From assembly GCA_964270895.1 (NCBI GenBank), contig OZ185441.1: 64,000 bases of DNA, one strand, 5' to 3'. The position numbers were made by a program, and so were the translations under genes. Shown here in pieces: positions 4,840 to 64,000 of the stretch. The stretch is from Podarcis filfolensis (Eukaryota). A model generated the notes under the pieces. It made no database searches, was not told the origin of the DNA, and worked only from the letters and a program-made list of their open reading frames with translations. Positions within the stretch are counted from its first letter, which is position 1; each line of letters opens with the position of its first letter.

Positions 4840-4921
4840 GTGGAGGTGGAAGAGGATCATTATAAATGACCCCGGTCCATAGGAACACACATCACTCTCC
4901 ATTAGACTCCTTGAAGGCAAG
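4840..4921 (+). promoter_or_regulatory. Core promoter and non-coding exon 1 of serpin gene A
   Basis: GTGGAGGTGG 4840-4849, TATAAA 4861-4866, Inr-like TCACTCT 4892-4898, donor AAG|GTAAAT after 4921; same layout as promoters of genes B, C, D. Confidence 0.7.
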
Positions 4922-5585
4922 GTAAATGTCTATCCTTTTCGAGGGTGATTGAAATGCTGGATTAAGTTAAGGGGCTTTGCAAAAATAGAAGTTGCTAAAG
5001 AAATGGGTGGGGGAAGATGATCATTGCTAACATGCCTTGTGTCTGGCATTTTGGAGAAGGAGATTATGCTAACCCTAGTACTGCTTTTACTGCATCCCCC
5101 ATGACCTCCAGGTCTGGCTGGCTGGCTTTCCCAGGCCACAACCCTTCCTAGGCCACACGGCTTTATAGATCTGCTCTTGCCTGGCTGAAATGCCTGGCCC
5201 CGGCCTCTACTGGTATGTGGCCCCTGGAAGGTTGCCCATGGGAGAAAATGACTCTTAGGCTGAATTTTTTTCCCCTTTATCCATGCTCCATGCTACACCA
5301 ACTCTCAAATGGTAGAGCTATTCCTTAACGGTACTGCTGCTTCCTGTTAAAGTCACCCCCCCCCCGGACAGAAAGCAAACAAATATGTTCGGATTTTCTC
5401 CCCATCCCGCTGATTTCCTGCATGCTGGGAGAGTGTTTCTTGGATGTCTGCATCCAGCCATTCAATTCCGACATCTGCATTCTGAGTTCAGGAAATGCTG
5501 CACCTCTTGATTCTGGTTGATTGCATAACCTGGTGCTTGGCTGCAAATGGTAATCTGTAATTTGTCAATGGGTATATGTAACTTG

Positions 5586-5933
5586 GAGGGACGCGGGTGG
5601 CGCTGTGAGTTAAACCACAGAGCCTAGGACTTGCTGATCAGAAGGTTGGCGGTTCGAATCCCCGCGACGCGGTGAGCTCCCGTTGCTCGGTCCCTGCTCC
5701 TGCCAACCTAGCAGTTTGAAAGCACGTCAAAGTGCAAGTAGATAAATAGATACCGCTCCAGCGGGAAGGTAAACGGCGTTTCCGTGTGCTGCTCTGGATT
5801 CGCCAGAAGCGGCTTAGTCATGCTGGCGACAGCATGTACGCCGGCTCCCTCGGCCAATAAAGCGAGATGAGTGCCGCAACCCCAGAGTCGGTCACGACTG
5901 GACCTAATGGTCAGGGGTCCCTTTACCTTTACC
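5586..5933 (+). mobile_element. Sauria SINE, near full length, in intron 1 of gene A
   Basis: GGGACGCGGGTGGCGCTGTG head, ACCTTT tail, 13-bp TSD TATATGTAACTTG (5573-5585 and 5934-5946). Confidence 0.88.
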
Positions 5934-6095
5934 TATATGTAACTTGTAAGAAATTTAGTGGAGTTTCTTTTTTTTCACATCTTCATGCAGTGGAACCTTA
6001 CAAAGAGATGCAATTCAGAAGCCACAGATGCTCTTTTTGTGGTTCCTATTCTTCTTATTTCTCTTCTCTCCCCCCCCGAACATTCAGATTTCACA

Positions 6096-6263
6096 ATGAC
6101 CACCCTCAGTGAGGCAAATGCTAAGTTTGCCCTAGACTTTTACCGCCAGGTGGTCCATGAGCACCCATGCGAAAATGTCCTGTTTTCTCCTGCGAATCTC
6201 ACAGCAGCAGTTGGCCTGCTCCTCTATGCCTCTGGTTGTGATACAGCAGCTCATTTGGAAAAG
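6096..6263 (+). CDS. Gene A exon 2 (first coding exon)
   Basis: Acceptor CAG| at 6087, ATG 6096, MTTLSEANAKFALDFY...HLEK, donor GTAGGT; 168 bp. Confidence 0.93.
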
Positions 6264-9200
6264 GTAGGTATCAAATTGCACTGTTCTATTATTATTTTCA
6301 TGCTTAGTTTGACAAGTGTGTGTGCATGTGTTGTAAATAAACTCAATAAAAACAACAACAAATTGCACTGCTACAACCTTAGGAAGTCTTACATGTGCCA
6401 CTTTAGTGTATTAATTGCCTTGTAAGTAGTACATCTTTTCCTTCCCAATATATATTATTACATTAAAAAAAAAAACCCACAATCTAACAACATCTGAAAA
6501 AGTGAATGAGTAGGTGCCCCAGATTTATAGTAGTAGCTATTTAGCAGTAGTAGCTATTTATTTCTTAATTGCCCTCCTCAAATATTGCTCCAGGTGATGT
6601 AAACAATTTTTAAAAAAATACATTTTAAGAGAGAGGATAGCTCAGTTGGTAGAGCATGAGACTCTTGATCTCGGGGTCATGGTTTTAAGCCCCACATTGG
6701 GTGAAAGATTCCTGCATTGCAAGGGGCTGGACTGCATTGCCCTGGTGGTCACTTCCAACTCTACAATTCTATGATTCTATACATGCACAAGCAATTTCAC
6801 CTTAGATTATGCACTAGAGATACGTTTTCCAACACTCTAAGCCAGCTGTCAGCAACCTTGCACCCTCCAGATATTTTGGACTTCAACTCCCATCAGATCC
6901 CAGCCATGTTTTTGTCATCCAAAACATCTGGAGGACACCAGGCCAGGGAAGATTTCACAACAACAATAATATCCTCATCCTGTTTGTAATATTTGCCCAT
7001 TATATCCAGTCTTTGGAGAGTAGCCATAGCTATAGCTAAGTGGTAGAGTACATGCCTTGCACACAGAAAGTCTCTTGTTATATACCTAGCATCTCCATCT
7101 TAAAAGGATAAGGTGGAAGGTTAAAGTAAGAGGTCTGCTTGACACCCTGGAGAACAACTGTCAGCCAGGGTAGACAACACTGGGATAGATGGACAATCTT
7201 GACTCGGAACAAGGCATCTTCCTACATTCCTAGTCTTGCTACATTCAAGTATATTGTTGACGTGAACGAGCAGTTGCACAATCCCAAGTAGAGCAAGTCA
7301 GCAACTGGTCTGAATACACATGACACAGCTCCACTAGTAAGTTAAGCTAGTTTGGACCTGTACTCTACTTAGGAGAAACGTATATGTTAGTCACTCTGTG
7401 GTCTTATGAAAGAGTATGCTCTACAGCTTCTACTGTTAGAAGATTAATGGAAATCCAAGGAAGAGGAGATCAAAATATTCAGTATAATGGGACAGACCTC
7501 CTGGATTGTGCTGCTTCAGGCTGCAAGGTGGTGGGGATAGGGATATCAGTTAGAAAACGATATTAGAAGAAAGGTCTAACTCTTTTTTATCCTTATATCT
7601 TATATCCAGACATTAAACAGTGCTTTTCTGACAATATGGTTTCTAAACGCTTTATGTGCTTTGACCTTATCGTACCACAGATATGCATGCCAACCAAATA
7701 CATTGTTGAAACCTTCTAAGTCCAACACATCAGTATTTTCAAGAAGCAGCCATTCTCTCAGCCAGCAAAAAGTGGCTGATTCATAATAAAGTTTAAGGTC
7801 TGGCAGGGCAAATCCACCTCTTTCTTTAGCATCAGTTAATATCTTAAATTTTATTCGAGGCTTCTTGCCCTGCCAGACAAATCTGGAAATATCTCTCTGC
7901 CACTTCTTGAAACAGTCCATTTTGTCTAAGATTTGCAATGTTTGAAACAAAAACAATATCCTTGGCAACACATTCATTTTTGTCACAGCAATTCGGCCTA
8001 ACAGTGATAACTTCAGATTTGACCATATTTCTAAGTCCTTTTTCACTTCAATCCAACATTTTTCATCGTTATCCTTAAATAAATTCACATTCTTAGCAGT
8101 CATATTAACCCCTAAATATTTCACTTTCTTAACCAGTGTTAATCCTGTCTCCTTCTGAAACTTATCTCTCTCAGTCACAGTTAGATTTTTCTCTAAAACC
8201 TTAGTTTTCATCTTGTTCAACTTAAAGCCTGCTACCTGTCCAAATTCTTGAATCAGTTCCAGTACTCTTTTAGTACTAGATTCTGGTTCCTGTAAAGTCA
8301 ATACCAAATCATCAGCAAATGCTTTCAGTTTGTACTGTTTAGCTCCCACTTGCATACCTTTAACCAATTGGTCCCTTCTAATCATATTTAGCAAAACCTC
8401 CAGGACCGATATAAAAAGCAATGGAGAGATTGGGCAACCTTGTCGTGTTCCTTTCTCAATCCTAAATTCTTCCGTCACAACATTATTCACAATTAATTTA
8501 TCCTTTTGTTCTGAATAAATTGCACCTATACCATTTCCAAAACCTTGACCTACCCCCATCCCCTGTAGATTCTTCTTCATAAAACTCCAAGAGAAAGATC
8601 TAACTCTTTAATGGGGGAGGGGTAGTCATAAAAACACATTATATTGTTGTTTTGTTCAATGGCTTCATTGTCTAAAACAACAACAAAGAATCTTATTGTG
8701 AATGGTCTAAGCCAGGCTTGAAAAATGCCTGGCTTAGAGCCACTAAATCAACGATAGTCAATGTTGTTGGACACCAACTTGCATCAGACCTAGTCAACAT
8801 GGTCAGTGCTCAGGGATGATGTGAGCTATAATCTAACAACAGCTGTAGGACATTATATCTACTGTCCCCACACTGAGGGCTTATCCACACTTACTTTTCC
8901 TCCACGCTTTCCATACATGGTCTGTACCTTAAAGCTCCATCTGAGCGCCCTCACTTTTTAATTTTGCTCTAGAGCTTTTCCCGTAAATTCCCACTCTTTA
9001 CTGTTGAATTGGAGCAAGTGGCAATACATAGAAAACCCAAATGGTTGTTTGCTCTGTTTCAGCTTTAAAGAACGGGTTTTCACGGGGAAAGCTCCGGAGC
9101 AAAAAAGAGAGAGGGGAGCTAGGACACAGAATTTGTGCCTGGAAAGAGTGAGGCAAAATATATTTGTGGATAAGCCTGGGCCACATGCAAAACATCAGTC

Positions 9201-12200
9201 ATATATAGGGTGTCACTGGGGATGGGGTCCAGGGGGGCTCAATAAAGTTCCTAAGGAGCAAAAGTGGGGAGGTTGACCTGTATCTCCCTGTCGCATTCAT
9301 CAATTCTTCCATACTCTCAAAGAAAAGCACCCATGTGTATGCTTGTTTGAAAGAATCCTTATTTAGGGGAAAGAACAATATCTCCTCTGTAAGGATTTGG
9401 GTTCACATTTTATCTTTCCCACAATTAATGAACTAACTAGTATTGTCTCATTGTTTACTTCCATGACTGAAGTTCTCTTACAATTCCATTCCAGATACTT
9501 CACTGGGATGAACTTAAAGAGTGTGCCGCTCCAGTACGGAGAAGATATTTCAGGACAAGAAGAAGCTATGGTCGCTTGGAAGACAGACTAAGAACTCCTT
9601 TATATTTTCGTACCTCTCCAACAGTGGTATTTCTTTATTTAACTTTCTTGTATTTTGCTTGAATTAGACCAGTAGCTAAAAGTATTCAGTAGTTTGGGAA
9701 ACAAGCAATGCATAGTCAATTGACTAACAATTATATAATTGTTTTAATGAACTTTTTGCTGCTGTTTGCTTTTATTTATATGCTATTGTGGTAGATATAG
9801 TGATTGCAATGTTTATTGTTTTTAATGCTATTGTGATTATTGCGAGTCTCTTTGAGCTAAACCGGTTGATGGAAAAGCAGTATACAAATATTATATCAAA
9901 TATAGGGGAGAAGGGAATGTTGCCAGTTTAGTTGGGGGTAAAATCACACGCAACAGAGGGTTAGGACTGTGGATACATCTGAGGAGCTGGGGATGTGCAG
10001 ACAGCCTACAGTCAGGAAAACCGAAGGCAATAGATCGAGAAAGAGATATTTAAAAGAAAAGTGGATGCAGAAAAAGCAAAGGGCACAGAAGAAAGGGAAC
10101 TGTGCAAGAAGAGGTTGACCAGAGAACGAAGTTCTCTACAACTTTACAAGAAGATAAGGATGGGGATGTTCTGCTATGTGGGAAAGGAAAATGGAAAGAT
10201 AAGCAGACAGTGGCAGGAAAAGCTATGGTGCTGTTGAAATCTGTAAGTTGCGGGTTCACACATTTCAGAAGTTATTCATCTGGTTTATGGAGGGCAGTGA
10301 CAGGGGTTGGGCGAACATGCTCTTCTCCACTCTCTCTCAAACAATTCCAATTGTGTGTGTTGGGGTGGAGCATGCATTAATTAGAATGTGTCAAGGGGTC
10401 TATCGAGAAGAGATGATTCTTGTGAAGGGGAGAATGCATCAACTTGCTCTGTGTTTTCTTGGGGAGGGCCTCTGCACACTGCTTAATAGTTTGTTTTCCC
10501 ATACTACATTAAATGGACAGCATTTGACATTCCACTGGACACAGAAGTGCTTTGTTTTCATTTTAGGGCCTTCGCTCTCACGATATTAAAGAGGGGTTGC
10601 GTCTAGGAGCAGCTCCACGTGGCAGTCCTACAGACAGCAGGCAGAGACCCGAATCTCCATGTTGTCCTCCACATGAGGTAATGGACCCAAACTGGGAAAT
10701 GTAAGAGAATTAGTTGAGCTGTAAGAGCTAGTAAGACTTGATATTGTGTGTAGCTTCTAACAGCGTAATCCTAGCATGTTTACTCAGAAGTAGGGATGGA
10801 AGGGTGTGTCATTTTCAGTTCTCCCAGGTTCTCATTTTTCCAATCTTAAATTCAGTTCTCCACATTTCTGCTAAAAATGCATTTTATAGATTAAAAAATC
10901 CTCATAAAAATTCTTCAACATTTTAGTTCAAATTTCTCCTATTAAACACATCTTTGCATGCAGTTTTTTAAGGTTCTTATTTATATTTTCCAAATTTATA
11001 CATTTCATTAGTTTTCCAATCAATTTAACATTTCCAAATTTTGACTTCCCCTCTTTCTGCAGTTGCTTAAATTATCTTTTTAATATCTTCTGCATATCCA
11101 GGTTCAAATAACTTGCTCATTTATTTATCTACTGTAAATATATACACTAAAAAATTCCAGGTTATTACATCAATCCTGCTAATGTTTTTATCTGTTTACA
11201 GTTTATGTGTAAATATTCAGTAAACCATTTCCATTCTTTTATAAAAAGTTTGTTATCTTTGCATGTGGTTTTGACTGATATATTGCATCCTTGCAAGCAA
11301 TTTCTCCTGTTACAATGCATTTATATGCTATATTCACCTATATGTTCATATTTATGCACCGTATCCCCTAATATATGCATTTTTAAAAACACTCTTCATT
11401 GGAGAAATGCATCACAAAATTCAAATAAGTGTGAATTTCAAAGGATGGTTATGAACCCACCAGGTAGCCCTAAGAAAGCGACTCTTTCCCATCAGGAATA
11501 CAGAGTAAACCCTTGCAGGGTTATTTTTACTTTATTTTTAATATCTATTTATAGCCCTTTATAGTTTTGTGGTTTTATTTTATGATTTTGATCATTTGTA
11601 CTTTTTATAATTGTGATAACAAAACAGTTTGTTTTAAGAAGTGCAAAAATAGTATGTGATGTTCTTTGAACACTTAGTGTAGTGGTTAAGAGCAGTGGAC
11701 TTGTAATCTGGTGAACCAGGTTCGATTCCCCACTCCTCCACATGCAGCTGTTGGGTGACCTTGGGCTAGTCACACTTCTCTGAAGTCTCTCAGCCTCACT
11801 CACCTCACAGAGTGCTTGTTGTGGGGGGATGAAGGGAAAGGAGATTGTTAGCTGCTTTGAGACTCCTTAGGGTAGTGATAAAACGGGATATCAAATCCAA
11901 ACTCTTCTTCTTCTTGACAAAATGCTGAGTATTAGTACTATTATACGTGGAAAATTGGAGAAACATGCAGCACAGGTTTTAATAAAGAATGAGTGATTCC
12001 AGGTCTCCTGTATAGTAGCCCCTTCAATATGTTCTATGGGTGGAAGTCAACCACATTTTACTGAGAGCAGACCCATTGAAATTAATGAGAAAGACTATTA
12101 GGTCCTTAAATGTCAGTAAGTATACTCTGAGTAAAACTTAGTTGAATACCAACCTTTGTAATAGACTCTGTAGAGAAACATCCAAAGCAGTTGAAGATGT

Positions 12201-15200
12201 TAATCACGTAACTCTAATTGTGAAGAGATTGGGAACAATTAACTATGTGCCCTGGACATGATTGACACATACATGGGCATCCTTTGATTTCTAATTCCTT
12301 AGTTACTCTCCACAATATGTGTGAACTGGCTCCATTGACACATAGGAATAAGTTACATTTAGGGCTCAGTCACATGTGCAATTAATCAAGCGATGAACAC
12401 ACAGAGCTCAGATGTTTAGATGTATGATATAATGACATTAGTTTTGTTCCTTGAAGGTGCCTGATTATGAGTGTGAGAAACCCGCAGCAGTCCACACTGC
12501 TTTCCACAGAATCCTTGCAGAACTCAATAAGTCCAGCACCAACTATGAGCTGAGCTTTGCCAACCGGCTCTACGGAGACCAGTCCATTGCTTTTCTTCAG
12601 GTAATTTCTGGACGGTTCATTATGCGGTCCAACTTTCAAAGAGTAGTGTCATATCTCCAAAACAGTTTGGTACAAATGCTTTACCTGGTTTGCTATTATT
12701 CAAAACTTGGATAAATTGATAATGCTTGTTGTTAGCTGCTTAATTCTAGACACAGAGAGACAGAACTTTCAGTAATGTGTTAAATAATTATTCCTGTTTT
12801 CATACAGAAATTCCTGTACTGTGCTCTGAAACTGTACTTGACTGAGGTGGATGGAGCTGACATTCACTATGCCCCAGAAGAAGTCCGGAGGCTGATAAAC
12901 CTTTGGGCTGAAGTCCAGACACATGGTATTATTATGAAGTGGGGTTTTTTTTGGGGGGGGGGAGGAGTAAGCTGTATGCCTGCAAGACCCTTCTCATTCC
13001 TGGATCCAGCAAGTGTTAACATCTAAGCAAGGATTCAAACTTATGGAATAGCTAGGCTAGCTTCCTAGTAATAGCCAAAGTAAAGGTAATAGCCAAAGTA
13101 AAGGTAAAGGTAAAGGTAAAGGGACCCCTGACTGTTAGGTCCAGTCGCGGACGACTCTGGGGTTGTGGCACTCATCTCGCTTTATTGGTTGAGGGAGCTG
13201 GCGTACAGCTTCCGGGTCATGTGGCCAGCATGACTAAGCCACTTCTGGTGAACCAGAGCAGCACATGAAAATGCTGTTTACCTTCCTGCTGGAGCGGTAC
13301 CTATTTATCTACTTGCACTTTGACGTACTTTTGAACTGCTGGGTGGGCAGGAGCAGGGACCGAGCAACGGGAGCTCTGGAATAACTTGTGATCTGATGCC
13401 ATCCCTTTGAAGCTAAGTGTATTAGCACACACTACAGTTAATGTAGCAGCAGCCATTTGCTTAGTTAGTATACTTTGTATATTAGCAATAAAAAGAAATT
13501 CAAGTTTGCAGGTTTTATTTCCCTTAAGCAAATAAAGGATTGCCTCTTCCTGAAGACATTAATGTTTCCCGCAATCCCATTTGTATATGGCTGGGCATGA
13601 TATCTTTTCCAGACTGAAACCTTCCTTTAATTATTAATGGGTCCATATACCTAAAGATCCAGAAGCCTTCTCGTATTTAATATTTATGTAGCGCCATCAA
13701 CGTGCAGGACACTTTACAGGGTGACGTAAGCAAATAGATAGATCCTTGCCTCAAAGAGGTCACAGTGCAAGGTCACATCCTTATTCAACTAAATGGTTGT
13801 GCCAGCAGAAGCCAGCACAATGCTTCCTGTGATGCAATAGGACTTTCCCTCTCTCCTCCCCACCATGTGCCCTTGTGTCCTTTCCAAATCTCCTTTAAAT
13901 CTGCAATATGCTTAAATGTATGGTATGGATGTGATCCCAATGTAAATATCTGTGAAGGAGACAACAGACATGGGTGACTCATCCTTGGTAACAAGGGATG
14001 GATGTGAGTCTTCCTTCCTGTACTACAAATAAACTACAGAAGGCCTTACCCCCAACATTGTTTTAAAGGTAAAATCCAGGATCTTCTCCCGAAGGACAGC
14101 TTTGATTGTCTCGCTCAACTTCTGCACGTGAACACTCTCTACTTTAAAGGGCAATGGGATGTGAAATTTGACAAAGAACTCACCAGAGTAGATAGATTCT
14201 ACTTGACTGAGGTAAGTTCCAGAAATATACCTGTTCCAGAAATATACCTAGAGGTTTGTATTTCCTTATGCTCTAAATGTTTTCAGAGCAAGAAGAGGAC
14301 TCTAAGAAATAGTGTCTATGTGGCACCATTGCTGGTTTCAGGTACTTTTCAAAGGTTACTAAAGCTCTGTTGGAACAACGGGGTCTTTATGAGCTACACA
14401 GGAATAATGCAACATAAACCACTCAACCTGGTTTCAAAGAAGATTCAACCACCACTTTCCTTGTTGATCATATGAGTTGGGAAGGAGAATATAAAACTGG
14501 TTCTGTATTGTTTTCTGAGATTTTCTAGCTCTGCAGAATTCTTTTGTTTTTAAACAAGAGAACGAGTGAACAAAGGAGGGTGCAAGAACATTAAAATTCC
14601 CTTGTTTCTAGACCAACTCATAAGCAGATCTTGGTGGTGAAGACTACAGTGTATTAACCATCCTAGCCCACCATTGTAAAAAGTGCCTGTATCAGCTCAT
14701 AAGCTGCACTCACAGTTTCAGTTTCTGTTGCCAGCAACTCCCTTCTGTATGTCCTTTTTCTCTGTAAGGCTCTTGCAAAATTCTTGTTGGTTGCACAACA
14801 TCTGTGTGGCCTTTTCTTAATAAGTCTGCCTCTGTTGTTTATCTCTAGTACAGGGGTAGCCAACATGGCGCCTTCCAGATTCTGTTCGATTCTTAACTCC
14901 CTGTGACCTCAGGTAGTCAGGGATGATAGGAGTTGTAGTCCACAACATCTGGAGGGGAACACTGGTTCTTTTCCACATTACTCAAATCTCCATTGCTTCT
15001 GTACATGAAGTTTACATGTTTAGTCATGATGGCTAAAAGCCACAGGTAGACCTATCTTCCATGATATTGGACCACTTCTTTTAAAACACCATATAAAATA
15101 GTGACTGTCCTATCATTGTGTGACAATGATGTCTGTGACTTTAGTAAAGTGGTATATGAATAAATATTTAAGAAATTTCTTCTGATCCTACTGCAAATCA

Positions 15201-18200
15201 ATTTAATTGGATGGGTCTATGTCAGGCTTCCTCAACCTTGGCCCTCCAGATGTTTTTGGCCTACAACTCCCATGATCCCTAGCTAGCAGGACCAGTGGTC
15301 AGGGATGATGGTAATTGTAGTCTCAAAAACATCTGGAGGGCCGATGTTGAGGAAGCCTGGTCTATGTTCTAAAAGAGTAGTTCCTGAGCTTTTTCTCCCA
15401 CAGACCACTTGAAAATTGCAGAGAGTATTGATTTTTCTGCCTGTTGTATCTATTGTATTGGTCTGTGCATAAACATTTCAGTTGTTGTTTTTCCTCACCC
15501 CACCCAACTAAACTAAGAACAAGAACATGCATAGGGAGACCCGTAAATTGTTGCTTGTGATTATAAGTTATAATGTGACTGGTGTTTTGAAATTTTCATG
15601 GGTGCCCATGATTTGAATTTGAATTTGTCAGCATCTTGAGCCAAACAGGTGTTTTGAAACTCTAAAAGGATTTCCGCGTGTCTGAATTGGTAAGCTTGAA
15701 TATGTCATTTCAGAGTTTTCTGCAGATCAGTTACTGACAAAAACAAAACTAATCCACAGAGCACAAAGATGAGTTGACTTTCTGTTTTCCTTCATATTTC
15801 TCACAGGACGTTTGCACAAATGTACAGCTGATGTACCGGAAGGGCCAGTATAATATCGGCACAATTGAGGGATGTGATGTGCAGATGCTTGAGATTCCCT
15901 ACAGAAACAATGAGCTGAGTTTGTTCATATTGCTGCCCAGAGACTGCGACCCTGAATCTCTTCAACAGGTAACATTCTGATGATTCCTCCCCCTTTGCAT
16001 AGGGCTGACATCTCCTTTACAAACAGGTTCTGAAACTGAAGTTGCTTGTAGCACTGACAAAACCAAAAAGCAAAGCCCCTCATTTTTGTGCCAGGCTTGG
16101 CAATCCAGAGGATCCCTATTGCTTGCCAGCTGTAGGGCTTGTTGTTGTCTTCCCCTGTTGTTGTCCACACCTGAAGAGGGCTCTGGGGCCTGAGCACACA
16201 CATTCGTTATAGCTCACTAAGCCAGGTCACAGTTTATGGTTCAAGTTTGAGAGTTAGGAAGATAGGTCGGCATCAGTGAAGTGCTTCTGCTAGTGCAAGG
16301 ACCTCTGTTTCTGCAACTGAACTTCTCCTCCCTCTCCTCCTTTGTGCAATCCAAAGTCCTTGCAACTGTGCAACTGTGCAATCCAAAGTCCTTGCCAACT
16401 GTGGTGATCACACAGGGTCCCCGGACGTTTGACGGTCTATTGATCCCTGTGCCACCACTGTGATTGCCTCTTCGCTGCCACCAACCCGTTTCTCTCGGGT
16501 ACACACGGAGTCCAGACAGTTGTTAACATTAACAAATAATCAAGTTTATTTTATAGGCATGAACAAGCTTATGGTTTCAGTTATTTTTTCTTGGCAGTTT
16601 CTTAATCTTAGTTTCTTTTACTGTCCTATACATTCCTAACAACTTCAAACTGATTATCCCAACTATCTATCTGACTCCACCTAACAATTCCTCTCACTCT
16701 CTCACAACACAACTCAACCAACCCACAGACTTATCCTCCCTCTTTCTTCTCCAACCCCCAACTCTCAACTGACTTCTAACTCTAAGTCCTCCTATCAGTT
16801 TCTCTCTGACCAATCACATCACACTCATTTAACTCTTTCCTTATGAGCCACCTAGGAGGCAAACGCCACACCAACCTATGTTTCTAACTCTCAAACCCTT
16901 GTAAAACTGCCTTCAACCAGGCCAGGTGATTTATCCAGCATTGCCCACTCAAGCGTGGCAGTGTTTCAAATGCATCATATACTATACAGTGGTACCTCAG
17001 GTTAAGTACTTAATTCGTTCCGGAGGTCCGTACTTAACCTGAAACTGTTCTTAACCTGAAGCACCACTTTAGCTAGTGGGGCCTTCTGCTGCTGCCGAGC
17101 CGCCGGAGCACAATTTCTGTTCTCATCTTGAAGCACTATTTCTGGGTTAGCGGAGTCTGTAACCTGAAGCGTATGTAACCCGAGGTACCACTGTACTGGA
17201 GAGCTTCTACACTCAAAGGGCAAGCTCTATCACTGAGCTGTGGTCACTGAGTTCCTGTTACACATTTCCTACACTTCCAACTGCAGTCAGTGTGAACCCT
17301 CCCAAGCTGGCTGCTGCTCGGTTATCAAATTCTTTTACTTTTGCCACCCTCCGACTGCAGTACCTCTGCTGTGCCACCCCTGCTCCCAACTGCATTACAT
17401 AGTCTCTCTTCTGGACCAATTTAGCTGTGGTCTGAGGTAAATGGACCCAGCACAACCAGGGAATCGCAAACTGGTCCCACCAACTTTGAGACTCTAGAAA
17501 TGTGTCACAAGGCACCATTTGACTGTTTATAAATTTCAACCTTGTATGAGCAGCCCCCGCCTGGCTGATGTCATGTCATGTTACAAATTATGCATGCGTT
17601 GAATCTCAAATGTCAGTATGACATTTTTGAAACCACTGAAAAATAATTGGGGGTATGATGTGCTAGAAAAATATTATTGTGTCAATGTTTGTTGCCAAAT
17701 TTATGTCATGCGGTTATTTGCGTGGACAGGCGGAGTCCCCCAAACCCTGGGCACCCCCCCATGTGGAATAACGACTCAAGACAACGTGCTATGGGATTAA
17801 ATTGGCCACAACTTTATTATATTACAGATGTGGGTAGACCTGGGCTCAGGCATTGGGCGTTATCCCTCCCCAGTCCCCAGCTGAGGATCTAGAAAACATC
17901 AGGGTTATCCAGTGTGTGTGGGGGGGATGGGCCAGCTCTGGAGAACATATGTTCAAGCAGAGATAGCCGCCCCCGTTACGCCGCCGTCACAGGGGAGAGC
18001 AATGACGACCTCTCGGCGTACGGTCAAAGACTCCCCTCAGAAACCCCTTTAATAGGGAACTCTGGTATCGCCGCTGCAAAGAGGAAGGGGGTGTGGGTCA
18101 CCGCTGCACGCCCCTCCCATTCAGGAAGATAGACTAAGGGATTCCGCCCAAGGCTTGATACCGCCACCCGAGACCGCACAGTTGCAGTCTACACCTGAAA

Positions 18201-25396: not shown

Positions 25397-26440
25397 AGTA
25401 CAATTCTTATCAGCCCCATCCAGCAAGGCTAATGGTCAGGGGTGATGTAATCCAACAATATGGAGGGCCACAGGTTCTCCATTGCTCCTTTATAATGATG
25501 AGATTAGCTAGGATTTTTGCACAGGAATTACAGCTACCCATTTTGAGTTTCAAGTCGAAGTAATGACTTTTTTGGGGAAAGTGAGTCCCTATTTGTAAGG
25601 ATACACATCTTTCCCTTTTTCTTTTTTTAAACAACCCTGTTCATGAGCATAGTTCCCTCCTCAGCCTTTGCACCAATTTTTATTCCAATTACTACATCTT
25701 TTTCTTTTTCTTTTTCAGTTAATTATATGGGTTTAACTCAGACAGTTAGAAACCATGTATTTAAGGGCTAATGTCAAGATGTTACATGGACACTGTTAAA
25801 ATTGTTCATGAAAAGCACCTCCCATTTCAGCTCAGCCCTAGTGGAAATTACACAGAGATTTCCCTCCCTTCAACTGGAAGATTGACAGCTATTTTGTGTT
25901 TGTTGTTCAGTCTGTGATATGAGAATACAAATGCTTAGTTCATCATATACAGACGCTGTTTGTGAGAAAACAAACCATACCTTTTGCTTGTCATACTCTG
26001 AAAGGAGGAGGCTGAAAAAACTAGACTTGGAGAATTCATTTTTTTTAAAAAAATTGTTCTACTGCTGTTTTTCCAGGGCTGAAGGATTTCGCAATGACTT
26101 CCCTCAGTGAAGCAAATGCTAAGTTTGCCACTGACTTCTTCCATCTGCTGAGAAAAGAACCCATGTGGAAATATCCTGTTTTCTCCAGTTAATCTCTCCA
26201 CTGCCCTTCACCTGCTGCTTTACGGATCACGGCATGATACCAAAGCTGAAATTGAAAAGGTAGGATGCATATTTATTTCCCAGTCTTTCTCTAACATCAT
26301 GAGAAGCCAGTAAGAGAAACCGAGAGGACATGAGTTACCAAAGTCACCTTATGAATTTCATACCCATGCAGAGATTTGGACCCTGGTTTCCTCACATGAG
26401 TGGATGAAGCTGCCTGTTATATTGGTCCATCTAGTCTAGA

Positions 26441-44601: not shown

Positions 44602-44698
44602 GTGGGGGTGTGAGATGATCAGTATAAATACCAGCGTCTCACAGGAGGAGAGCATCACACTCACCTGCCAGACTCCTATCATCACAGCTGAAGCCAAG
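44602..44698 (+). promoter_or_regulatory. Core promoter and non-coding exon 1 of serpin gene C
   Basis: GTGGGGGTGT 44602-44611, TATAAA 44623-44628, donor AAG|GTAAGC after 44698. Confidence 0.8.
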
Positions 44699-44911: not shown

Positions 44912-45079
44912 ATGACCACCCTGCCTGAAGCCAATGCTAAATTTGGAGTCGACTTTTTCAAAGTGTTGACCACTGAGCACCCATGCGACAACCTCGTGTT
45001 CTCCCCTGCGAACCTCACCGCAGGCCTGGGCCTACTCGCTTATGCATCTGGTTGTGAACAAGCAGATCAGATTGAGAAG
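44912..45079 (+). CDS. Gene C exon 2
   Basis: MTTLPEANAKFGVDFFKVLTTEHPCDNLVFSPANL...QIEK; 168 bp. Confidence 0.93.
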
Positions 45080-48000
45080 GTGGGTCTAATCAAGCAGTAG
45101 AGATGCAGCCTTCAGACTGGGCTCATCATTAGCAGATACCTTTCCATCACCGGTCATATTTGATACAAGTTGAGAAATGATCTCACTGTGGCTTGATCCA
45201 GTAATAAGCCCAGTCAACGTCTCTGCACAAAATCCCATAAATGTGCAGAGATCAAAGAATATTGCATCACTAGGCATGGAGTAGAAATTTGGTTGAATGG
45301 AATGGAAATCTTCCAAATTTGTAGTTTTCAAAACAATGTATGAGCCAAAAACAGCTCTTTTTTAATAGATTTGTACTTACCTGTACTTATTTTGTAAAAG
45401 TAATATTTACAAAAAATCATATATTAGGGGGAAATGTGCATAAAAATGAAGATATTAGTGAAAGTAGCATAACACATGCATTATACTGGGGAAATTACTT
45501 GCAGAAATGTGTACATTAGTAAAAGAAAATGCATCTAAAAATGGGTTTATTAGGAGAATTTCACACTAAAATGCTTGTGATTAAAAAAATAGCAAACTGT
45601 TGGAGAACTAAATTTAAGATTCGATTCCTTCAGGTCTCATCCTATATGAGATTTGTTGCTATCATCTCAAGGCAGAACCATAGATTGCCTAAAGTTTGTT
45701 TCAAAGATTAGTATGCAGGAAGATATCCATCCTGCCAATGTCACATATGATCTAAGAGTCATGTGAATCGTCCCTAATATACATATCAGGATAATAGGTG
45801 CTGCTGTTATAATATTGCCTGTGCAACTGAAGCAATGTTCCAATTTCATTCAAGGTCCTGCATTGGGATGAAGTGAAAGAGTGTGACAAACCCAGAAGCA
45901 GGAGCCTGGGACATTCAACAACCAGACTAAGAAGGGTATGTAGAAGAACGCTTGGATAAAGGTGTATTCCTCCCCTGCCCATAGAACCCAGCTTGCATAT
46001 TAGTATTATCTCCTGTTATCTCAACATCAAATCCATGCCTGTTGGGAAGAAACATATCTGAAGGAAGAACAGAGGCAGCGAGCAGTCAATCAATGAAAGC
46101 GCAAATGTCACTTTCACAAATACATTTGAAACAAAATTTTCAGATGTGAAGTTAACTGCCCCTCCTTAAGTTGAATGGGGAATACAGCCTGCAATTATTT
46201 GTGGTATATTTGTGGCTTCTCATTTGTGGTATCAGTGCAACATTGGGAAAACTATAGAGTTCTATGAGTCTACTTATGGATACGTACATTTTGTAACTTC
46301 ATTGCAGGCACAAGAAAAAGTTGAAACCTGCCCCAGACCAAGACCGCGTCCTGAGCCAACCAAGCCTGAAGCAACTCGCCCCAGACCAAGACCCCGTCCT
46401 GAGCCAACCAAGCCTGAACCAACTTGCCCCAGACCAAGACCCCGTCCTGAGCCAACCAGGCCTGAGCCAACTTGCCCCAAACCAAGACCCCGCCCTGAAC
46501 CAGAGCAACCTAAACCTTGTGACAAGAGACGAGTCATTCACCGCCCAGCTCCTTGCCCTGAGCCCGAGCCCGAGCCCGAGCCACGTTGTCCTAGACGCGT
46601 AAGTTGTGAAACATCTGGAGAGTTTCATCTAGATGATTTTTTCTTTATTTTTTATTTAAAATTTAGGGGGCTGTCTCTAAGCATTCTACATGGTACACAC
46701 AACTTGTGATAAAATCGACAGGAAAGTAGGAATGAAACCGCTAAATTCTTGCTTAGATGTGAAGTTCACTGGGTGATGTTGAGTCAGTCACCATCAACCC
46801 CCATCTAACGTTGCTGTGAGCATAAAATTGAGTAAATCACAAGAAAGGTGTGCTGGGCTGCCTGCAGGGATTCAGATGTGATAAACGTTTACTTCAGAGT
46901 AGGCATTCCTGAGTTCAGTATAACTTTCAAGCATTCCTGCCTGAGATAAGGGTATAGATTTTCTTTCTCACAAGACAAACCCTTAAGAAGCAGCCAGGTG
47001 TCATGAGAATTAACCTTCTATTTTGAATCCTTAGGATGTTCCCTGCTACGAGTGTGAGGAGCCTGAAGGCATCCATACAGCATTCAGCAAAATCCTTGCG
47101 ACTCTTAATGAGCCCAGCAGCAACTATACCCTGAGCTTTGCCAACAAACTCTATGGAAACAATGACATTGCCTTCATCCAGGTAATGCTAATTTTGGCTC
47201 CTATGGGTGCTTCACTGTACTGTGAGAACCAAGTGCACATTGCAACCTGCAATTGACTGTATTCTACATAAATGGGCTCATCATCTACTGGTGTCTGTCA
47301 AAGCTGTGCCTCATTCCCAGGCCATCAGAGGAAATGATAACAATTACTTGCTCTACAAAGTGCTTTACCTACAAAATCCAGTGATGGTGGTGGTGGTTGC
47401 TGTTGCTTTTATTATTATTATGTATTATATTTATACCCCACTCATTGGGAGGAATTGGGAGGAACTGAATTTCTGAGGGCATTAGGCAGCAATTGGAAAA
47501 TTCCCAAATGAGAAAGGTGATTATGGATAATATATGGATCCAATGTTTTCTTGTTCTGTTCAGAAATTCCTTTACTGTGCTCTGAAACTGTACTTGACTG
47601 AAGTGGAGAACGCTGATCTGCATAATGCCCCAGAGGAAGTAAGGAGACTCATCAACCTTTGGGTCGAAGTCCAGACACATGGTAAGACCACAGCACACTC
47701 CAATGACTTCTTGATATAACTTTCATGACAGGGAGGTCATGATTTTTATTCTGCAAACTAGGAACCAATTAAATCTTACTGAACCGACAATCAGTTAAGA
47801 GCCCATTGTGGAATAGCCTCTACTCTCTTCCAAACCAGAGGAAAGGTCAGATTATCAAAACAAATGAAACTGGTGCCCATAATATTTTGTTTATTAAAAC
47901 ATTTAAATACCTCCATTCGGCTGCAAAGGACCACTCAGGGTATAATTAAGTACTTCATCTATCAAGTTGCTTAATTTATCTTCTATAAATAGTGAGTTAG

Positions 48001-50760: not shown

Positions 50761-50990
50761 AGTGTGGTGTAGTGGTTAAGAGCAGTGGACTTGTAATCTG
50801 GTGAACCGGGTTCGATTCCCTGCTCCTCCACATGCAGCTGCTGGGTGACCTTGGGCTAGTCACACTTCTCTGAAGTCTCTCAGCCCCACTCACCTCACAG
50901 AGTGTTTGTTGTGGGGGAGGAAGGGAAAGGAGATTGTTAGCTGCTTTGAGACTCCTTAGGGTAGTGATAAAGTGGGATATCAAATCCAAA
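50761..50990 (+). mobile_element. Squam3-like SINE
   Basis: Same consensus; tail missing. Confidence 0.8.
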
Positions 50991-58844: not shown

Positions 58845-59100
58845 GCCAGTGTGGTGTAGTGGTTAAGAGCGATAGACTCGTAATCTGGGGAACCGGGTTC
58901 GCGTCTCTGCTCCTCCACATGCAGCTGCTGGGTGACCTTGGGCTAGTCACACTTCTTTGAAGTCTCTCAGCCCCACTCACCTCACAGAGTGTTTGTTGTG
59001 GGGGAGGAAGGGAAAGGAGAATGTTAGTCGCTTTGAGACTCCTTAAAGGGAGTGAAAGGCGGGATATCAAATCCAAACTCTTCTTCTTCTTCTCTTCTTC
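58845..59100 (+). mobile_element. Squam3-like SINE
   Basis: Same consensus, (CTT)n tail. Confidence 0.8.
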
Positions 59101-59709
59101 AAAAACAACAGCTTTCCTCTGCCACTCACGCTCAGCATCTTGAATTGTATTTGGAACTATAGTGCCTTTGGACTCGGACATTTCATTGAGCCATTTTGAC
59201 TGATAGAAACATTTTTCCCAATCTATTTTTTAAAACATCTAATCGAGTGATCCTCACCATTTCCTCCAGTGGTGAATTCATACCCACTGTCCTGCTGTGT
59301 CATTTTCAATTTCTTACACATTTTTTTCAAAGCCCATGTAGGGTGGTGTGGGGAATAAGAAAGGAGCCCTCTGCCTTTCCTGGCTCTAGGGACACACATT
59401 CTTTCAATGGAGTCTCTTGGGGGGGAAACTTGGTTTTAAGGGACAGTTTCAAGGGGATATTTGGAGTGCTTTGGGACACACTGACAATACACCAATGCTG
59501 ACAGGGTGTGTCACATTGTGCCTGCACTTTGCACTAGATGAAGTATACATAATTAAGCAAAGTCATATAGGGAGTATATGTGGCAACCCAAGATAATTAC
59601 CTCTGATCATTAGAAATGTCCAGTTTTTGCATCGTACTGGTTTCATTATGTAAATTTGAATTAATCTAATTTTTTGCAGATTCAGAAAATACAAAGTAGT
59701 TTAATGGTT

Positions 59710-59806
59710 GTGGGGGTGTGAGATGATCAGTATAAATACCAGCGTCTCACAGGAGGAGAGCATCACATTCACCTGCCAGACTCCTATCATCACAGCTGAA
59801 GCCAAG
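59710..59806 (+). promoter_or_regulatory. Core promoter and non-coding exon 1 of serpin gene D
   Basis: GTGGGGGTGT 59710-59719, TATAAA 59731-59736, donor after 59806; nearly identical to gene C. Confidence 0.8.
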
Positions 59807-60019
59807 GTAAGCAGCTCTTCTTTCAAGCATCCATGCAGCCTTGTGTTGGGTGATGTGCATCTTTACAGCAGTTCTTTTATCATGGATAGTTCTTCAAAAT
59901 TGTGGGTTTGGTGATAGAATGTATTGCAGTGCAGAAGTAGGAACAAGTATATCTGTATTCTGAAGGATCCTGAAATGATGAGCTGTTTTGGTCTTCCCTC
60001 AGAGCTTTTGAATTCCATC

Positions 60020-60187
60020 ATGACCACCCTGCCTGAAGCCAATGCTAAATTTGGAGTTGACTTTTTCAAAGTGTTGACCACTGAGCACCCATGCGACAAC
60101 CTTGTGTTCTCCCCTGTGAACCTCACCGCAGGCCTGGGTCTCCTCGCTTATGCATCTGGTTGTGAACAAGCAGATCAGATCGAGAAG
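60020..60187 (+). CDS. Gene D exon 2
   Basis: 168 bp, MTTLPEANAKFGVDFF...QIEK. Confidence 0.92.
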
Positions 60188-63100
60188 GTGGGTCTAATCA
60201 AGCAGTAGAGATGCAGCCTTCAGACTGGGCTCATCATTAGCAGATACCTTTCCATCACCGGTCATATTTGATACAAGTTGAGAAATGATCTCACTGTGGC
60301 TTGATCCAGTAATAAGCCCAGTCAACGTCTCTGCACAAAATCCCATAAATGTGCAGAGATCAAAGAATATTGCATCACTAGGCATGGAGGAGAAATTGGG
60401 TTGAATGGAATGGAAATCTTCCAAATGGAATCTTCCAAATTTGTAGTTTTCAAAACAATGTATGAGCCAAAAACAGCTCTTTTTAAATAGATTTGTACTT
60501 ACCTGTACTTGTTTTGTAAAAATATTTACAAAAAATCATATATTAGGGGGAAATTTGCATAAAAATGCAGATATTAGCGAAAGTAGCATAACATGCATTG
60601 TATTGGAGAAACTGCTTGCAAAAATGTGTACATTAGTAAAAGAAAATGCATCTGAAATGGCTTTATTAGGAGAATTTCGCACTAAAATGCTTGTGAATTT
60701 TCATGTGGATCTTTTTTAAAAAAATAAATAAAAAATAGCAAACTGTTGCAAAATGTGGAGAACTAAATTTAAGATTTGATTCCTTTAATTCTCATCCTAT
60801 ATGAGATTTGTTTCTATCATCTCAAGGCAGAACCATAGATTGCCTGAAGTTTGTATGTATGTTTGGATCATTAATTTAGCATGATTCAGATATCATGGGC
60901 CAAACATGTTGAATCATTTCAAAGAGTAGTATGCAGGAAGATATCCATCCTGCAAATGTCACATATGATCTAAGAGTCATGTGACATACATATCAGGATA
61001 ATAAGTCCTGCTGTTATATTATTGCCTGTGCAACTGAAGCAATGTTCCAATTTTATTCAAGGTCCTGCATTGGGATGAAGTGAAAGAGTGTGACAAACCC
61101 AGAAGCAGGAGCCTGGGACATTCAACAACCAGACTAAGAAGGGTATGTAGAAGAACGCTTGGAGGTGTATTCCTCCCCTGCCCAAAGAACCCAGCTTGCA
61201 TATTAGTATTATCTCCTGTTATCTCAACATCAACTCCATGCCTGTTGGGCAAAAACATCTCTAAAGGAAGAAAAGGGGCCTTGAGCACTGAATCAGCTCT
61301 TAAAAGTGCAAATGTCATTTTCATAAATATATTTGCAACAAAATATTTGGATGAAGGAGGATTAAAGCATCAATATATGTGTCTGATATCAGTGCAACAT
61401 CAGAACAAGGATTGGCTGATGTTTGAAAAACAAATTTGGTTTCATGCCACCATTTCTTATTCCTTTATTGTAAATGGGCTGGAAATGAACTACCTATGGA
61501 TACAGACATTTTATAACTTCATTGCAGACCCAAGGTGCTGGTGGTGCCAAACCGAGACCCCGTCCTGAACCTAAACCTTGTGACAAGAGACGAGTCATTC
61601 ACCGCCCAGCTCCTTGCCCTGAGCCCGAGCCCGAGCCACGTTGTCCTAGACGCGTAAGTTGTGAAACATCTGGAGAGTTTCATCAAAATAATAATAATAA
61701 TCTCTCACACACACAAATAGACATTTAGGGGGTTATCTCTAAGTATTCTAAATGATACCACACAACTTGTGATAAAATCCACAGGAAAGTAGGAATGAAA
61801 CCGCTAAATTCTTGCTTAGATGTGAAGTTCACTGGGTGATGTTGAGTCAGTCACCATCAACCCCCATCTAACATTGCCGTGAGCATAAAATTGAGTAAAT
61901 CACAAGAAAGATGAGCTGGGCTGCCTGGAGGGATTCAGATGTGATAAATGTTTACTTCAAAGTAGGCATACCTGAGGTCGACTTTCAAGCAAGCTTTGTT
62001 GCTTAAGCTAAGTTTGTAAGTTTTCTTTCTCACAAGAAATACCCTTAAGAAGATAAGTAGCCAGGTGTTGTGAGAATTAACCTCCTTCTTTTTGAATCCT
62101 TAGGATGTTCCTTGCTATGAGTGTGAGAAGCCTGAAGGAATCCATACGGCATTCAGCAAAATCCTTGCGACTCTTAATGAGCCCAGCGCCAACTATACTC
62201 TGAGCTTTGCCAACAAGCTCTATGGAAACAAGGACATTGCCTTCATCCAGGTAACTCTAATTTTGGCCCCTATGGGTGCTCCACTGCACTGTGAGAACCA
62301 AGTGCACATTGCAACCTGCTAGTGACTGTATTCTACCATAAATGGATTCATCATCTACTGGTGTCTGTCAAACTTGTGCCTCATTCCCAGGCAACCAGAG
62401 AGATCTGCTACGGTAATGATTATCTGCTCTATGAAAGTCTCCACCTGCAAAATTTAGTGTTCTGAAACTACAAAGAGGCACTGAATCTTTAAGGGAATTA
62501 GGCAGTACTCAAATGCGAGAGAATACTCTGGACATTTTCTGTTTTGTTATATATTTACTGATACATGGATCCAATGTTTTCTTGTTCTGTTCAGAAATTC
62601 GTTTTCTGTGCTCTCAAACTGTACTTGACTGAAGTGGATGGTGTGGATTTCCATAATGCCCCTGAGGAAGTGAGGAGACTCATCAACCTTTGGGTTGAAA
62701 CCCGTACACATGGTAAGATCACAGAATGCACTAGTGACCTCTTCCTGACATAACTTTCATGATAGGGAGGTCTCCGGTCTTTGTTCTTCTCATGCTGGTT
62801 CAAAAAACCAGTTAAATCTTTCTTATTCTCCAAGAATAAGCTAAGAGCCCACTGTGACCTCTGCTTTCCTTCAAACATGAGGAAAGGTAGGATTGATTTG
62901 TTGCAATAAACTGGTGCCCATACTATTTTATTTGCTTATAAAAACAGTTAAATGCTCCCATTCTGTTGCAAAGGACTACTTAGGGTATAATTAAGTACTT
63001 TATTCAAGCTGTTCCATTTATTCTCCATTAACCGTGAACTACAAATTGTATGCCCCCATTCCCCAAAAACCCATCGTAACAATTTCTTTGCCAGGTAAAA

Positions 63101-63925
63101 TCAAGGACCTTCTCCCCAAGGACAGCTTTGATTGCCTTGTTCAGCTCCTGCTGGTGAATGCTCTCTTCTTCAAAGGACAATGGGAAGTGAAATTTGACAA
63201 AGAGCTCACAGAAGAAGCTCCCTTTTACCCTCATCATGCAGATGAGGTGAGTTAGAAACGTATTCCTAGCTTCCTTGCTTCTTTTGTGCAGAGACAATGT
63301 ACCTTGTAACTTCCAGAATACACATTTAGTGTTGGTGTTGAGTTGCCCCAATGAGGTCTTGATGGAGGTCACTTGAAACACTTGGTGCAAGGAAGGCTCT
63401 GCAATGCTGGACGGTCATCACCCCTTTTAGTTGAAGATGACGGCCCAAAACTAGAGTTAGCTGTCCTAGAGCCCCACTGCTAACAATGGGGTTTAATTTG
63501 GCCACTTGATACCAGTCCAATTGATTTCAATTTAGTAGGATTGTTGCTGAAATTACAAAAGAGAATAATCTGCTGTCTCCCTTTTCTTTTTCTCTGGGAG
63601 GTGTTTTTTGTTTTGTTTTTTTGTTTTGCAATGCCGAATCTCATGATCTGAAAGAAAGAAAGAAAAAAAGAAAGAAAGAAAGAAAGAAAGAACTTCCCAA
63701 AGAAAACTAAGTTCCTTCTCTCTTTTTAAATATTTCCTTTTTTCCTTTTCTTCACAGAAGGAATGCCACAGCGTGCAGCTGATGCACAGGAAGGGAGTCT
63801 ACAATGCAGGGACAATTGACCTATGCGACGTTCAAGTCCAAGTTGTTGAGATCCCCTACAAGAACAATGAACTGACCTTCGTTCTGCTGCTGCCAGTAGA
63901 CTGCAGTGCAGAAGCTCTTGAACAG
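60020..63925 (+). CDS. Serpin gene D (close paralog of C; last exon lies beyond the window)
   Basis: Coding exons 60020-60187, 61062-61142, 61528-61653, 62104-62250, 62595-62712, 63095-63246, 63758-63925; open frame so far. Confidence 0.9.
61062..61142 (+). CDS. Gene D exon 3a
   Basis: 81 bp, VLHWDEVKECDKPRSRSLGHSTTRLRR. Confidence 0.88.
61528..61653 (+). CDS. Gene D exon 3b (short form)
   Basis: 126 bp, TQGAGGAKPRPRPEPKPCDKRRVIHRPAPCPEPEPEPRCPRR, ttcattgcag| and |gtaagt. Confidence 0.87.
62104..62250 (+). CDS. Gene D exon 4
   Basis: 147 bp, DVPCYECEKPEGIHTAF...DIAFIQ. Confidence 0.92.
62595..62712 (+). CDS. Gene D exon 5
   Basis: 118 bp, KFVFCALKLYLTEVDGVDFHNAPEEVRRLINLWVETRTHG. Confidence 0.92.
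63095..63246 (+). CDS. Gene D exon 6
   Basis: 152 bp, KIKDLLPKDSFDCLVQLLLVNALFFKGQW...HADE. Confidence 0.92.
63758..63925 (+). CDS. Gene D exon 7
   Basis: 168 bp, KECHSVQLMHRKG...EALEQ, same protein sequence as gene C. Confidence 0.92.
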
Positions 63926-64000
63926 GTAAATGGTCTTTCCATTCCTATGATACTGTCCATGGCCTTATTCACCTTATCCATCTCTGGCCCTCGATTTCAA

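Follow-up and report, generated by a model that had tools for sequence, protein, structure and literature searches.

Squamate clade B serpins with a two-exon, repeat-bearing CD loop and a hinge predicted to preclude protease inhibition

A 64,000-nt stretch of Podarcis filfolensis DNA (assembly GCA_964270895.1, contig OZ185441.1; hereafter the window) carries three clade B serpin (ov-serpin) genes in tandem, all on the + strand, which were located by tblastn with relatives, scans of open reading frames (ORFs) and inspection of splice sites and are referred to as G1, G3 and G4. They belong to a squamate family whose hinge, at the base of the reactive center loop (RCL), is acidic and proline-bearing, and whose CD loop is encoded by two exons. 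Our preferred account, which we would put at about even, is that the family is an ancient, squamate-specific clade of ov-serpins that was converted from inhibitors into abundant non-inhibitory proteins in which the serpin body acts as a carrier of modules.

The hinge provides the clearest indication of this conversion. It reads EEGGEEAEAP in G1 and EEGGEEPEPV in G3, so that the Glu/Pro hinge proposed for these genes in an initial annotation of the window is present in both; the G4 hinge lies outside the window. All family members show E-E-G-G-E-E-[AP]-E-[AP]-P, exactly or nearly so, whereas other serpins have E-E-G-T-E-A-A-A-A-T. P14 is Gly in 43 of 53 family members and Thr in 188 of 208 other serpins; P12 is Glu in the family (45/53) and Ala elsewhere (204/208); P10 is Glu in 30 of the 53 and Ala in 188 of the 208; and P8 of the family is Pro. 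An inhibitory hinge was taken to have small uncharged residues at P14, P12 and P10, and the corresponding consensus (P15-P9 G-[TS]-E-A-A-A-[AST]) occurs in 0/54 family members compared to 170/208 other serpins. Even-numbered hinge residues point inward into β-sheet A upon insertion, and charged or Pro changes at P14, P12 or P10 convert inhibitors to substrates, as exemplified by the P14 Arg of ovalbumin and by natural variants of C1-inhibitor and antithrombin. Because the family has charged residues and Pro at these inward-facing positions, loop insertion would be prevented and proteases would not be trapped. Loss of protease inhibition, which the initial annotation had predicted, is thus well supported at the level of sequence.

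Distal to the hinge, the RCL reads CPRDRRPRQE in G1 and CPKDRRPRRE in G3, and the motif C-P-[RK]-D-R-R-P-R-[RQ]-E is common to lacertids, iguanians and a teiid; the distal RCL differs in gecko and skink members. To estimate selection, G1 was compared with its ortholog in Zootoca (locus L001), in which all exons are colinear and free of indels. The ratio of non-synonymous to synonymous change (ω) was 0.24 for the whole gene, 0.21 for the serpin body and 0.05 for the RCL (5 synonymous changes and 1 non-synonymous change), as opposed to 0.93 for the CD loop, a value that comes from few changes. Across the exons shared by G3 and G4, ω was 0.20. Low values in the body and RCL together with a CD loop near 0.9 indicate functional genes in which the RCL is constrained while the loop evolves freely. 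Since the RCL motif is under strong purifying selection, the RCL, with its conserved acidic hinge and polybasic motif, is not decaying and represents more than an inert remnant.

The family was found to be widespread among squamates. An exhaustive HMMER search with the last exon returned 11 representatives at E <=1e-22 and then, across a sharp boundary, ordinary serpins at ~35% identity; the 6 representatives with a source name are all from squamates. Two word-indexed searches yielded ~60 family proteins from geckos, skinks, lacertids, teiids, amphisbaenians, anguimorphs, iguanians and snakes, and neither found a member outside squamates. Over three database searches, the family is present in ~25 species, squamates only, with several genes per species. 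The "lizard-lineage" subfamily of the initial annotation is distinct, as claimed, and its range has to be widened to squamates as a whole, including snakes and geckos. No description of it was found in the searchable literature, in agreement with the annotation's impression that it was undescribed, and its genes are auto-annotated "serpin B3-like".

In a maximum-likelihood tree (IQ-TREE, LG+C20 PMSF) the family is monophyletic, with an SH-like approximate likelihood ratio test (SH-aLRT) value of 100 and a stem length of 0.61, and is placed inside clade B near B3/B4/B11; the tree was built without the named human B1, B2, B6-B10, B12 and B13. Its sister is a clade of turtle genes (SH-aLRT 97), and the family and turtles together are nested among B11-like, B3/B4-like and other sauropsid genes (enclosing clade SH-aLRT 99), with B5 outside. 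The turtle genes were considered as possible sharers of the family's traits and were rejected, as their CD loop comes from one exon and their hinge is the canonical GTEAAAAT. At least three subclades each contain both geckos and non-gecko squamates, which implies at least three paralog lineages older than crown Squamata. Squamates also retain clade B genes with the canonical hinge (P0297, P0314, P0329 and P0358).

The gene models of the window, which contains no runs of N, were as follows.

4861..4922, + strand: G1 TATA box (TATAAAT, 4861-4867) and non-coding exon 1; donor 4922|GTAAAT; layout parallels the RNA-backed exon 1 of G3
6096..6263, + strand: G1 coding exon 1, helices A-C, starting MTTLSEANAKF; Pfam Serpin match
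9495..9626, + strand: G1 CD-loop exon a, 132 nt, phase 0-0, ILHWDELKEC...; 96% nucleotide identity to Zootoca and present in Zootoca model P0168
10567..10677, + strand: G1 CD-loop exon b (the extra exon), 111 nt, phase 0-0; 97% nucleotide identity to Zootoca
12457-12600, 12808-12925, 14069-14211, 15807-15968 and 18492-18884, + strand: G1 coding exons 4-8; serpin matches and dN/dS against Zootoca
26094..26259, + strand: G2, coding exon 1 alone, frameshifted by a 2-bp deletion; blastn/tblastn and comparison with Zootoca
44623..44698, + strand: G3 TATA box and non-coding exon 1 (end 44698), with intron 1 to 44892; RNA contig end and alignment with G4
44912..45079, + strand: G3 coding exon 1; RNA junction 45079|45855
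45855..45935, + strand: G3 CD-loop exon a, 81 nt; RNA junctions
46308..46598, + strand: G3 CD-loop exon b, 291 nt, with repeat array; Tandem Repeats Finder (TRF) and RNA junctions 45935|46308 and 46598|47035
47035-47181, 47564-47681, 48101-48252, 48757-48924 and 49113-49505, + strand: G3 coding exons 4-8; RNA at every junction
59731..59806, + strand: G4 TATA box and non-coding exon 1; alignment with G3
60020-60187, 61062-61142, 61528-61653, 62104-62250, 62595-62712, 63095-63246 and 63758-63925, + strand: G4 coding exons 1-7; gene model

G1 (4861-18884, 456 aa) and G3 (44623-49505, 505 aa) are complete. G4 begins at 59731 and runs past 64000, so that 7/8 of its coding exons (320 aa) are in the window and the final exon, which bears the hinge and RCL, falls beyond it. 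All exon boundaries of the three genes have AG/GT ends, and each gene has 9 exons when non-coding exon 1 is counted; coding exon lengths of G1 are 168 / [132+111] / 144 / 118 / 143 / 162 / 393 nt. Intron positions and phases of clade B are kept and agree with the boundaries of the turtle sister gene, the sole departure being the additional CD exon. The proteins likewise have clade B ends, with a start of MTTL(S/P)EANAKF at helix A and a finish of ...GRFAKPE, and, judged from sequence, have neither an N-terminal signal nor a C-terminal extension. Pfam Serpin (PF00079) matches the last exon at E=2e-22 and the first at 2.5e-8, and PF00079 is also found on the relatives. The window proteins are 90-97% identical to proteins of Podarcis muralis, Zootoca and Lacerta, which carry automatic names ("serpin B3-like", "leukocyte elastase inhibitor-like"). 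At 503 aa, P. muralis model P0159 is nearly the same as our G3 model, including the frame of the repeat exon. The shared promoter layout noted in the initial annotation is present in all three genes as TATAAAT followed by a non-coding exon 1 of ~60-75 nt ending in ...GAAG[GC]CAAG|GTAA, and positions 4861..4922 of G1 are 100% identical to the orthologous Zootoca locus.

Logan contigs from four RNA runs were placed on the window at 44800-49650. Seven internal G3 junctions were recovered, all at the predicted positions and with GT..AG ends, and a loose contig end mapped to 44670-44696, which gives the non-coding exon 1 of G3, its 194-nt intron 1 and the exon 1-exon 2 join. The junctions around G3 exon b fix the frame of the repeat exon as ...CPRPRPRPEPTKPEPT... 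Word depth over G3, a rough guide to expression, was hundreds to thousands in run X1 and ~20 in run X3 of one study. Family genes are thus transcribed, at very high depth in some samples. Run X1 also contains a G4-type transcript, in which the 40 letters that separate the two sides of the 45935/46507 joint encode TQGAGGAKPRPRP. The last exon of G1 occurs in different samples of the study from the last exon of G3, which suggests paralog-specific expression.

Clade B serpins known at the time of an earlier survey have seven or eight exons, the latter with one variable CD-loop exon (Kaiserman and Bird, PMC1308813). G1, G3 and G4 depart from this rule, as the initial annotation had recognized, in having two CD-loop exons, both phase 0-0 (132+111 nt in G1, 81+291 nt in G3 and 81+126 nt in G4). 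Enlarged loops were likewise measured, at 92 aa in G1, 136 aa in G3 and 81 aa in G4. In the main alignment the CD loop varies from 11 to 151 aa across the family, with a median of 50 aa compared to 21 aa in other serpins, and the modular character ascribed to it is borne out by its repeat-based construction and variable length. Exon b of G3 contains a 48-nt unit repeated 3.7 times at 92% identity, encoding CPRPRPRPEPTKPEPT, followed by an EP run (TRF); the short exon b of G4 (61528-61653) has no repeat array. The CD loop of Anolis carolinensis is 307 aa long and has 14 exact matches to RPRQHQEPSRPEPT, the 14-residue core of a ~17-aa unit CPRPRQHQEPSRPEPT, while that of Eublepharis extends to 482 aa with ~20 to 30 copies of a ~15-aa unit HTKPSDDRHQAQEPQ. 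The theme C-P-R-P-R-P-x-P-E-P is common to lacertid and iguanian loops, and a Pro-rich, Cys-poor variant occurs in a snake. Net charge of the loop is +5 in G1, +8 in G3, +6 in G4 and -16 in Eublepharis. The repeat exon had no Pfam match, and a feature search of the ESM Atlas with the A. carolinensis repeat loop gave weak serpin leads only.

The distribution of exon b bears on its age. In the sister gene of the turtle Chelonoidis (locus L003) the entire CD loop comes from one exon, whereas at locus L002 of the gecko Heteronotia the NCBI model skips an exon b that is open and has homologs in other geckos. An exon b in geckos and a single CD exon in turtles indicate that exon b is an innovation of the squamate clade older than the divergence of geckos. 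Some database isoforms are without exon a and/or exon b (P0178 compared to P0168; P0157), and no skipping of either cassette was seen in the RNA contigs; alternative, cassette-like use of exons a and b is possible. Automated models deal poorly with this region: in Phrynosoma platyrhinos, P0001 and P0170 have the repeat exon in the wrong frame (...APDQDHVLSQP...), and the 848-aa Eublepharis protein P0363, a serpin whose CD loop measures 482 aa, goes by the automatic name "glutamic acid-rich protein-like". The Glu-Pro run that ends G3 exon b (GCCCGA x4.5, 46555-46582) differs by 6 nt in an RNA run of a related species and in P0159, and is a coding microsatellite of variable length.

Cysteines are also more numerous than in other serpins. 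G1 has 14, G3 has 19 and G4 has at least 13; individual family proteins have between 4 and 30 (median 11), compared to a median of 4 in other serpins. Cys at ten positions of the body and one of the RCL is found in 40-72% of family members and in 0/36 outgroups. Such a variable, compositional pattern fits cross-linkable surface Cys better than fixed disulfide pairs, and we infer that the family Cys may be residues of the former kind. An AlphaFold2 (AF2) model of the ortholog P0159 had a predicted TM-score (pTM) of 0.76, with 346 residues at a predicted local distance difference test (pLDDT) value >=90; pLDDT was >90 in the core and 40-59 in the CD loop, which is accordingly predicted to be disordered. 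The best Foldseek matches of this model were native serpin B1, B3 and maspin (target-normalised TM 0.89-0.95), with ovalbumin and OVAX also among the good matches.

G3 and G4 form a mosaic. In an alignment of G3 (44400-49010) with G4 (59508-64000), identity is 97-100% at 44.7-45.4 kb, which takes in intron 1 and coding exon 1 and reaches into the beginning of the next intron, and again at 48.2-48.9 kb, and just 67-85% over 47.3-48.1 kb. CD exon a is identical in the two genes; exon 5 differs at 18/118 nt. This mosaic suggests gene conversion between G3 and G4.

The initial annotation had counted four tandem paralogs, but the window holds three genes and one frameshifted lone exon. The G2 exon has a sound acceptor, ATG and donor, but compared to its Zootoca counterpart, which is intact, it lacks 2 bp, and its frame runs into stops. 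Protein and DNA searches found no further serpin exon between 26.3 and 44.9 kb, G2 being ~18.6 kb from the first coding exon of G3, and no exon follows it in ~4.5 kb of colinear Zootoca sequence. A complete fourth paralog was sought over 19-44.8 kb by tblastn with 65 family proteins and then 362 serpins and by blastn with all G1 and G3 exons, and only the exon-1 copy was returned. A lone frameshifted exon with no further exons argues for three genes plus a relic. The position of G2 is conserved in Zootoca (L001:32318-32529, corresponding to window 26060-26270), where the exon is intact and an annotated serpin model begins at it and extends off the locus. The exon may serve in Zootoca as an alternative first coding exon, or the model that begins at it may have been joined wrongly.

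The remainder of the window includes mobile-element sequence. Remains of long interspersed nuclear element (LINE) type lie at 33416-35674 (+), 7600-8580 (-) and 52540-53037 (+). LINE ORFs of 752 aa and 326 aa match Pfam RVT_1 (E=5e-38 and 3e-17, respectively), and the 326-aa ORF is situated in the intron of G1 that separates coding exon 1 from CD exon a. The remaining ORF (52540-53037) has no Pfam match and by eye resembles the C-terminal part of the 752-aa ORF. A dispersed repeat resembling short interspersed nuclear elements and containing ...GTTAGCCGCTTTGAGACTCCTTAGGGTAGTGATAAAG... is present at ~910-1005, ~1875-1970, ~11810-11905, ~50900-50995 and ~58985-59080, and yields a recurrent spurious ORF motif AERLQRSVTSPRS. 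Between G2 and G3, a 179-aa ORF at 30187-30726 (+) has no Pfam match and is probably not a gene.

Taken as an evolutionary sequence, the data show that the family derives from an inhibitory gene of the B3/B4/B11 group, canonical and with 8 exons. Along the squamate stem its hinge became EEGGEE[PA]E[AP], placing Gly at P14, Glu at P12 and P10 and Pro at P8; a second phase 0-0 cassette exon was gained within the CD loop, and about ten new Cys in the serpin body. The CD loop evolves through expansion and contraction of short repeats, with purifying selection on the body and RCL. The body would most likely serve as a soluble carrier of a cross-linkable low-complexity module, rich in Cys/Pro/Arg/Glu in lacertids, iguanians and snakes and in Gln/Lys/His in geckos, and the acidic hinge and polybasic RCL would probably form a binding or processing site. 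The putative site of action is terminally differentiating epithelial cells of the epidermis or its derivatives. By analogy, the proteins may plausibly be cross-linked structural components of cornified epithelium, given the SPRR/involucrin-like composition of the loop, the Cys enrichment, the high transcript depth and the precedent of PAI-2. A more specific form of this proposal, which we offer tentatively and regard as possible rather than probable, is that these are squamate proteins of cornification or secretion that arose by placing SPRR- or involucrin-like cassettes in the CD loop of a disabled serpin. The fold would keep the cross-linkable repeat, which would otherwise be prone to aggregate, soluble until terminal differentiation, the RCL would act as a trigger or processing site, and the paralogs, with their differing loops, would mark different epidermal layers or a squamate-only shedding complex.

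Several observations weigh against conversion to a non-inhibitory, structural carrier. The loss of inhibition stands on sequence rules and on hinge mutants of other serpins, and Logan contig depth is a poor measure of expression. Cys/Pro richness, claimed in the initial annotation, is seen in G1, G3 and G4 and is not universal, as one gecko subclade has Cys-poor loops with units rich in Gln/His/Asp/Glu/Lys. The available text of a femoral-gland proteome paper, whose data were searched against P. muralis proteins, names SERPINE2 only and no family serpin. Lastly, strong conservation of the RCL would be unneeded in a purely structural protein and hints at a role directed at a protease or another partner.

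That hint leads to the idea that the proteins are still protease-directed, with RRPRR|E, in the exposed RCL, as a furin- or kallikrein-like bait that makes them decoys or non-canonical inhibitors of proprotein convertases or trypsin-like epidermal proteases, and with the CD loop serving only for localization. The conservation of CP[RK]DRRPRRE in lacertids, iguanians and a teiid and the RCL ω of 0.05 would fit, and SERPINB8 inhibits furin by way of an Arg-rich RCL. However, Glu at P12 and P10 and Pro at P8 are incompatible with the insertion step, the canonical hinge is absent from all 54 members, and the distal RCLs of geckos and skinks differ; we consider this explanation unlikely. We think it rather unlikely that the family is instead an ovalbumin-like bulk protein, secreted or stored in oviduct and egg, renal sex segment or gland secretion, whose Cys form disulfides and whose loops are hydrophilic spacers. 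Its non-inhibitory nature, the very abundant transcript, the good fold matches to ovalbumin and OVAX and the differing samples in which paralogs occur are consistent with such a protein, but there is no N-terminal signal peptide (the start MTTLPEANAKF is that of cytoplasmic ov-serpins), new Cys that are 40-72% conserved and number 4-30 per protein are unlike fixed disulfide pairs, and family members do not appear in the available femoral-gland proteome text.

A MENT-like nuclear protein, with a basic CD loop and RCL motif that would attach to chromatin or nucleic acid once cells have terminally differentiated, seems improbable. The loops of G1, G3 and G4 are positively charged, RRPRR resembles a nuclear localization signal (NLS), and NLS or AT-hook motifs occur in the CD loops of MENT and bomapin (PMC1308813). 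Yet the family lacks the AT-hook (RGRP), its hinge is not inhibitory as that of MENT is, and the charge of -16 in Eublepharis means that basicity is not a family trait. Least credible of all is that these are functionless, decaying duplicates whose hinge and loops reflect neutral drift. The long stem branch of 0.61, the CD loop ω of ~0.9 and the broken G2 copy could be read in this way, but intact frames in ~25 species, ω of 0.21 in the body and 0.05 in the RCL, a hinge kept from geckos to snakes, and splicing and abundant transcription of the genes already contradict it.

Conversion of a squamate clade to non-inhibitory carriers would matter for several reasons. Non-inhibitory members of clade B such as maspin and ovalbumin are isolated cases, whereas here a whole multigene clade would have given up inhibition; it predates the split of geckos from other squamates, added a ninth exon, and turned the CD loop into a fast-evolving repeat platform of 11-482 aa. 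If its members are structural parts of the epidermis or of gland secretions in squamates, they would form a novel barrier-protein class encoded away from the epidermal differentiation complex, and would offer a natural case of the serpin fold used as a carrier. The automatic names "serpin B3-like", "leukocyte elastase inhibitor-like" and "glutamic acid-rich protein-like" are misleading, as are inferences drawn from them. In the water-dragon genome, expanded "serpin B3/B4" groups were read as inflammation control (PMC12400805), a reading that would need revision if the expanded genes belong to the squamate subfamily.

Among named serpins, the closest relatives in the tree are SERPINB3/B4 (SCCA1/2), which also rank first by PDB sequence score, and SERPINB11; they have the same exon positions and phases, no signal peptide and a CD exon that starts VLH[WF]. 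B3 and B4, however, inhibit proteases; their hinge is GTEAAAAT, their ~25-aa CD loop comes from one exon, and they have 1-4 Cys. The squamate family has a non-insertable hinge by sequence, two CD exons, as many as 30 Cys and loops that reach 482 aa. Maspin (SERPINB5) is the best PDB match for the last exon and, like the family, is non-inhibitory, with a hinge (EDGGDSIEVP compared to EEGGEEAEAP) that has G at P14, E at P10 and P at P8 in common. Kinship with maspin as the origin of the hinge was rejected, as grouping the family with B5 costs 37.6 log-likelihood (lnL) units (approximately unbiased test, AU, p=0.0004) and B5 falls outside the clade; the maspin-like hinge is thus convergent. Nor do maspin orthology and its gene plan of 7 exons with no CD exon (PMC1308813) apply to a family with two CD exons.

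MENT, an avian SERPINB10-like protein, is another clade B serpin with an added CD-loop function. It has an AT-hook and an inhibitory hinge, and the family has neither: no RGRP or GRGR motif was found in it, and the NLS-like RRPRR occurs in the RCL. PAI-2 (SERPINB2) resembles the family in having a long C-D insert that confers a second function. As the initial annotation had it, this insert is 33 aa long (residues 66-98, PDB 1BY7 title) and carries transglutaminase cross-linking sites, which PMC1308813, citing Jensen 1994, places at Gln83/84/86. PAI-2 differs in that it is still an inhibitor and its loop is single-exon and non-repetitive. The loop modules themselves resemble SPRR proteins and involucrin, with short tandem Pro-rich repeats containing Cys or Gln/Lys, fast change in repeat number and high expression. 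The genes for SPRR proteins and involucrin are small, lie in the epidermal differentiation complex and have a single coding exon, and their products have no folded domain. The repeats of the squamate family, by contrast, are contained in exon b of a 9-exon gene in a serpin cluster, and the likeness is one of composition only.

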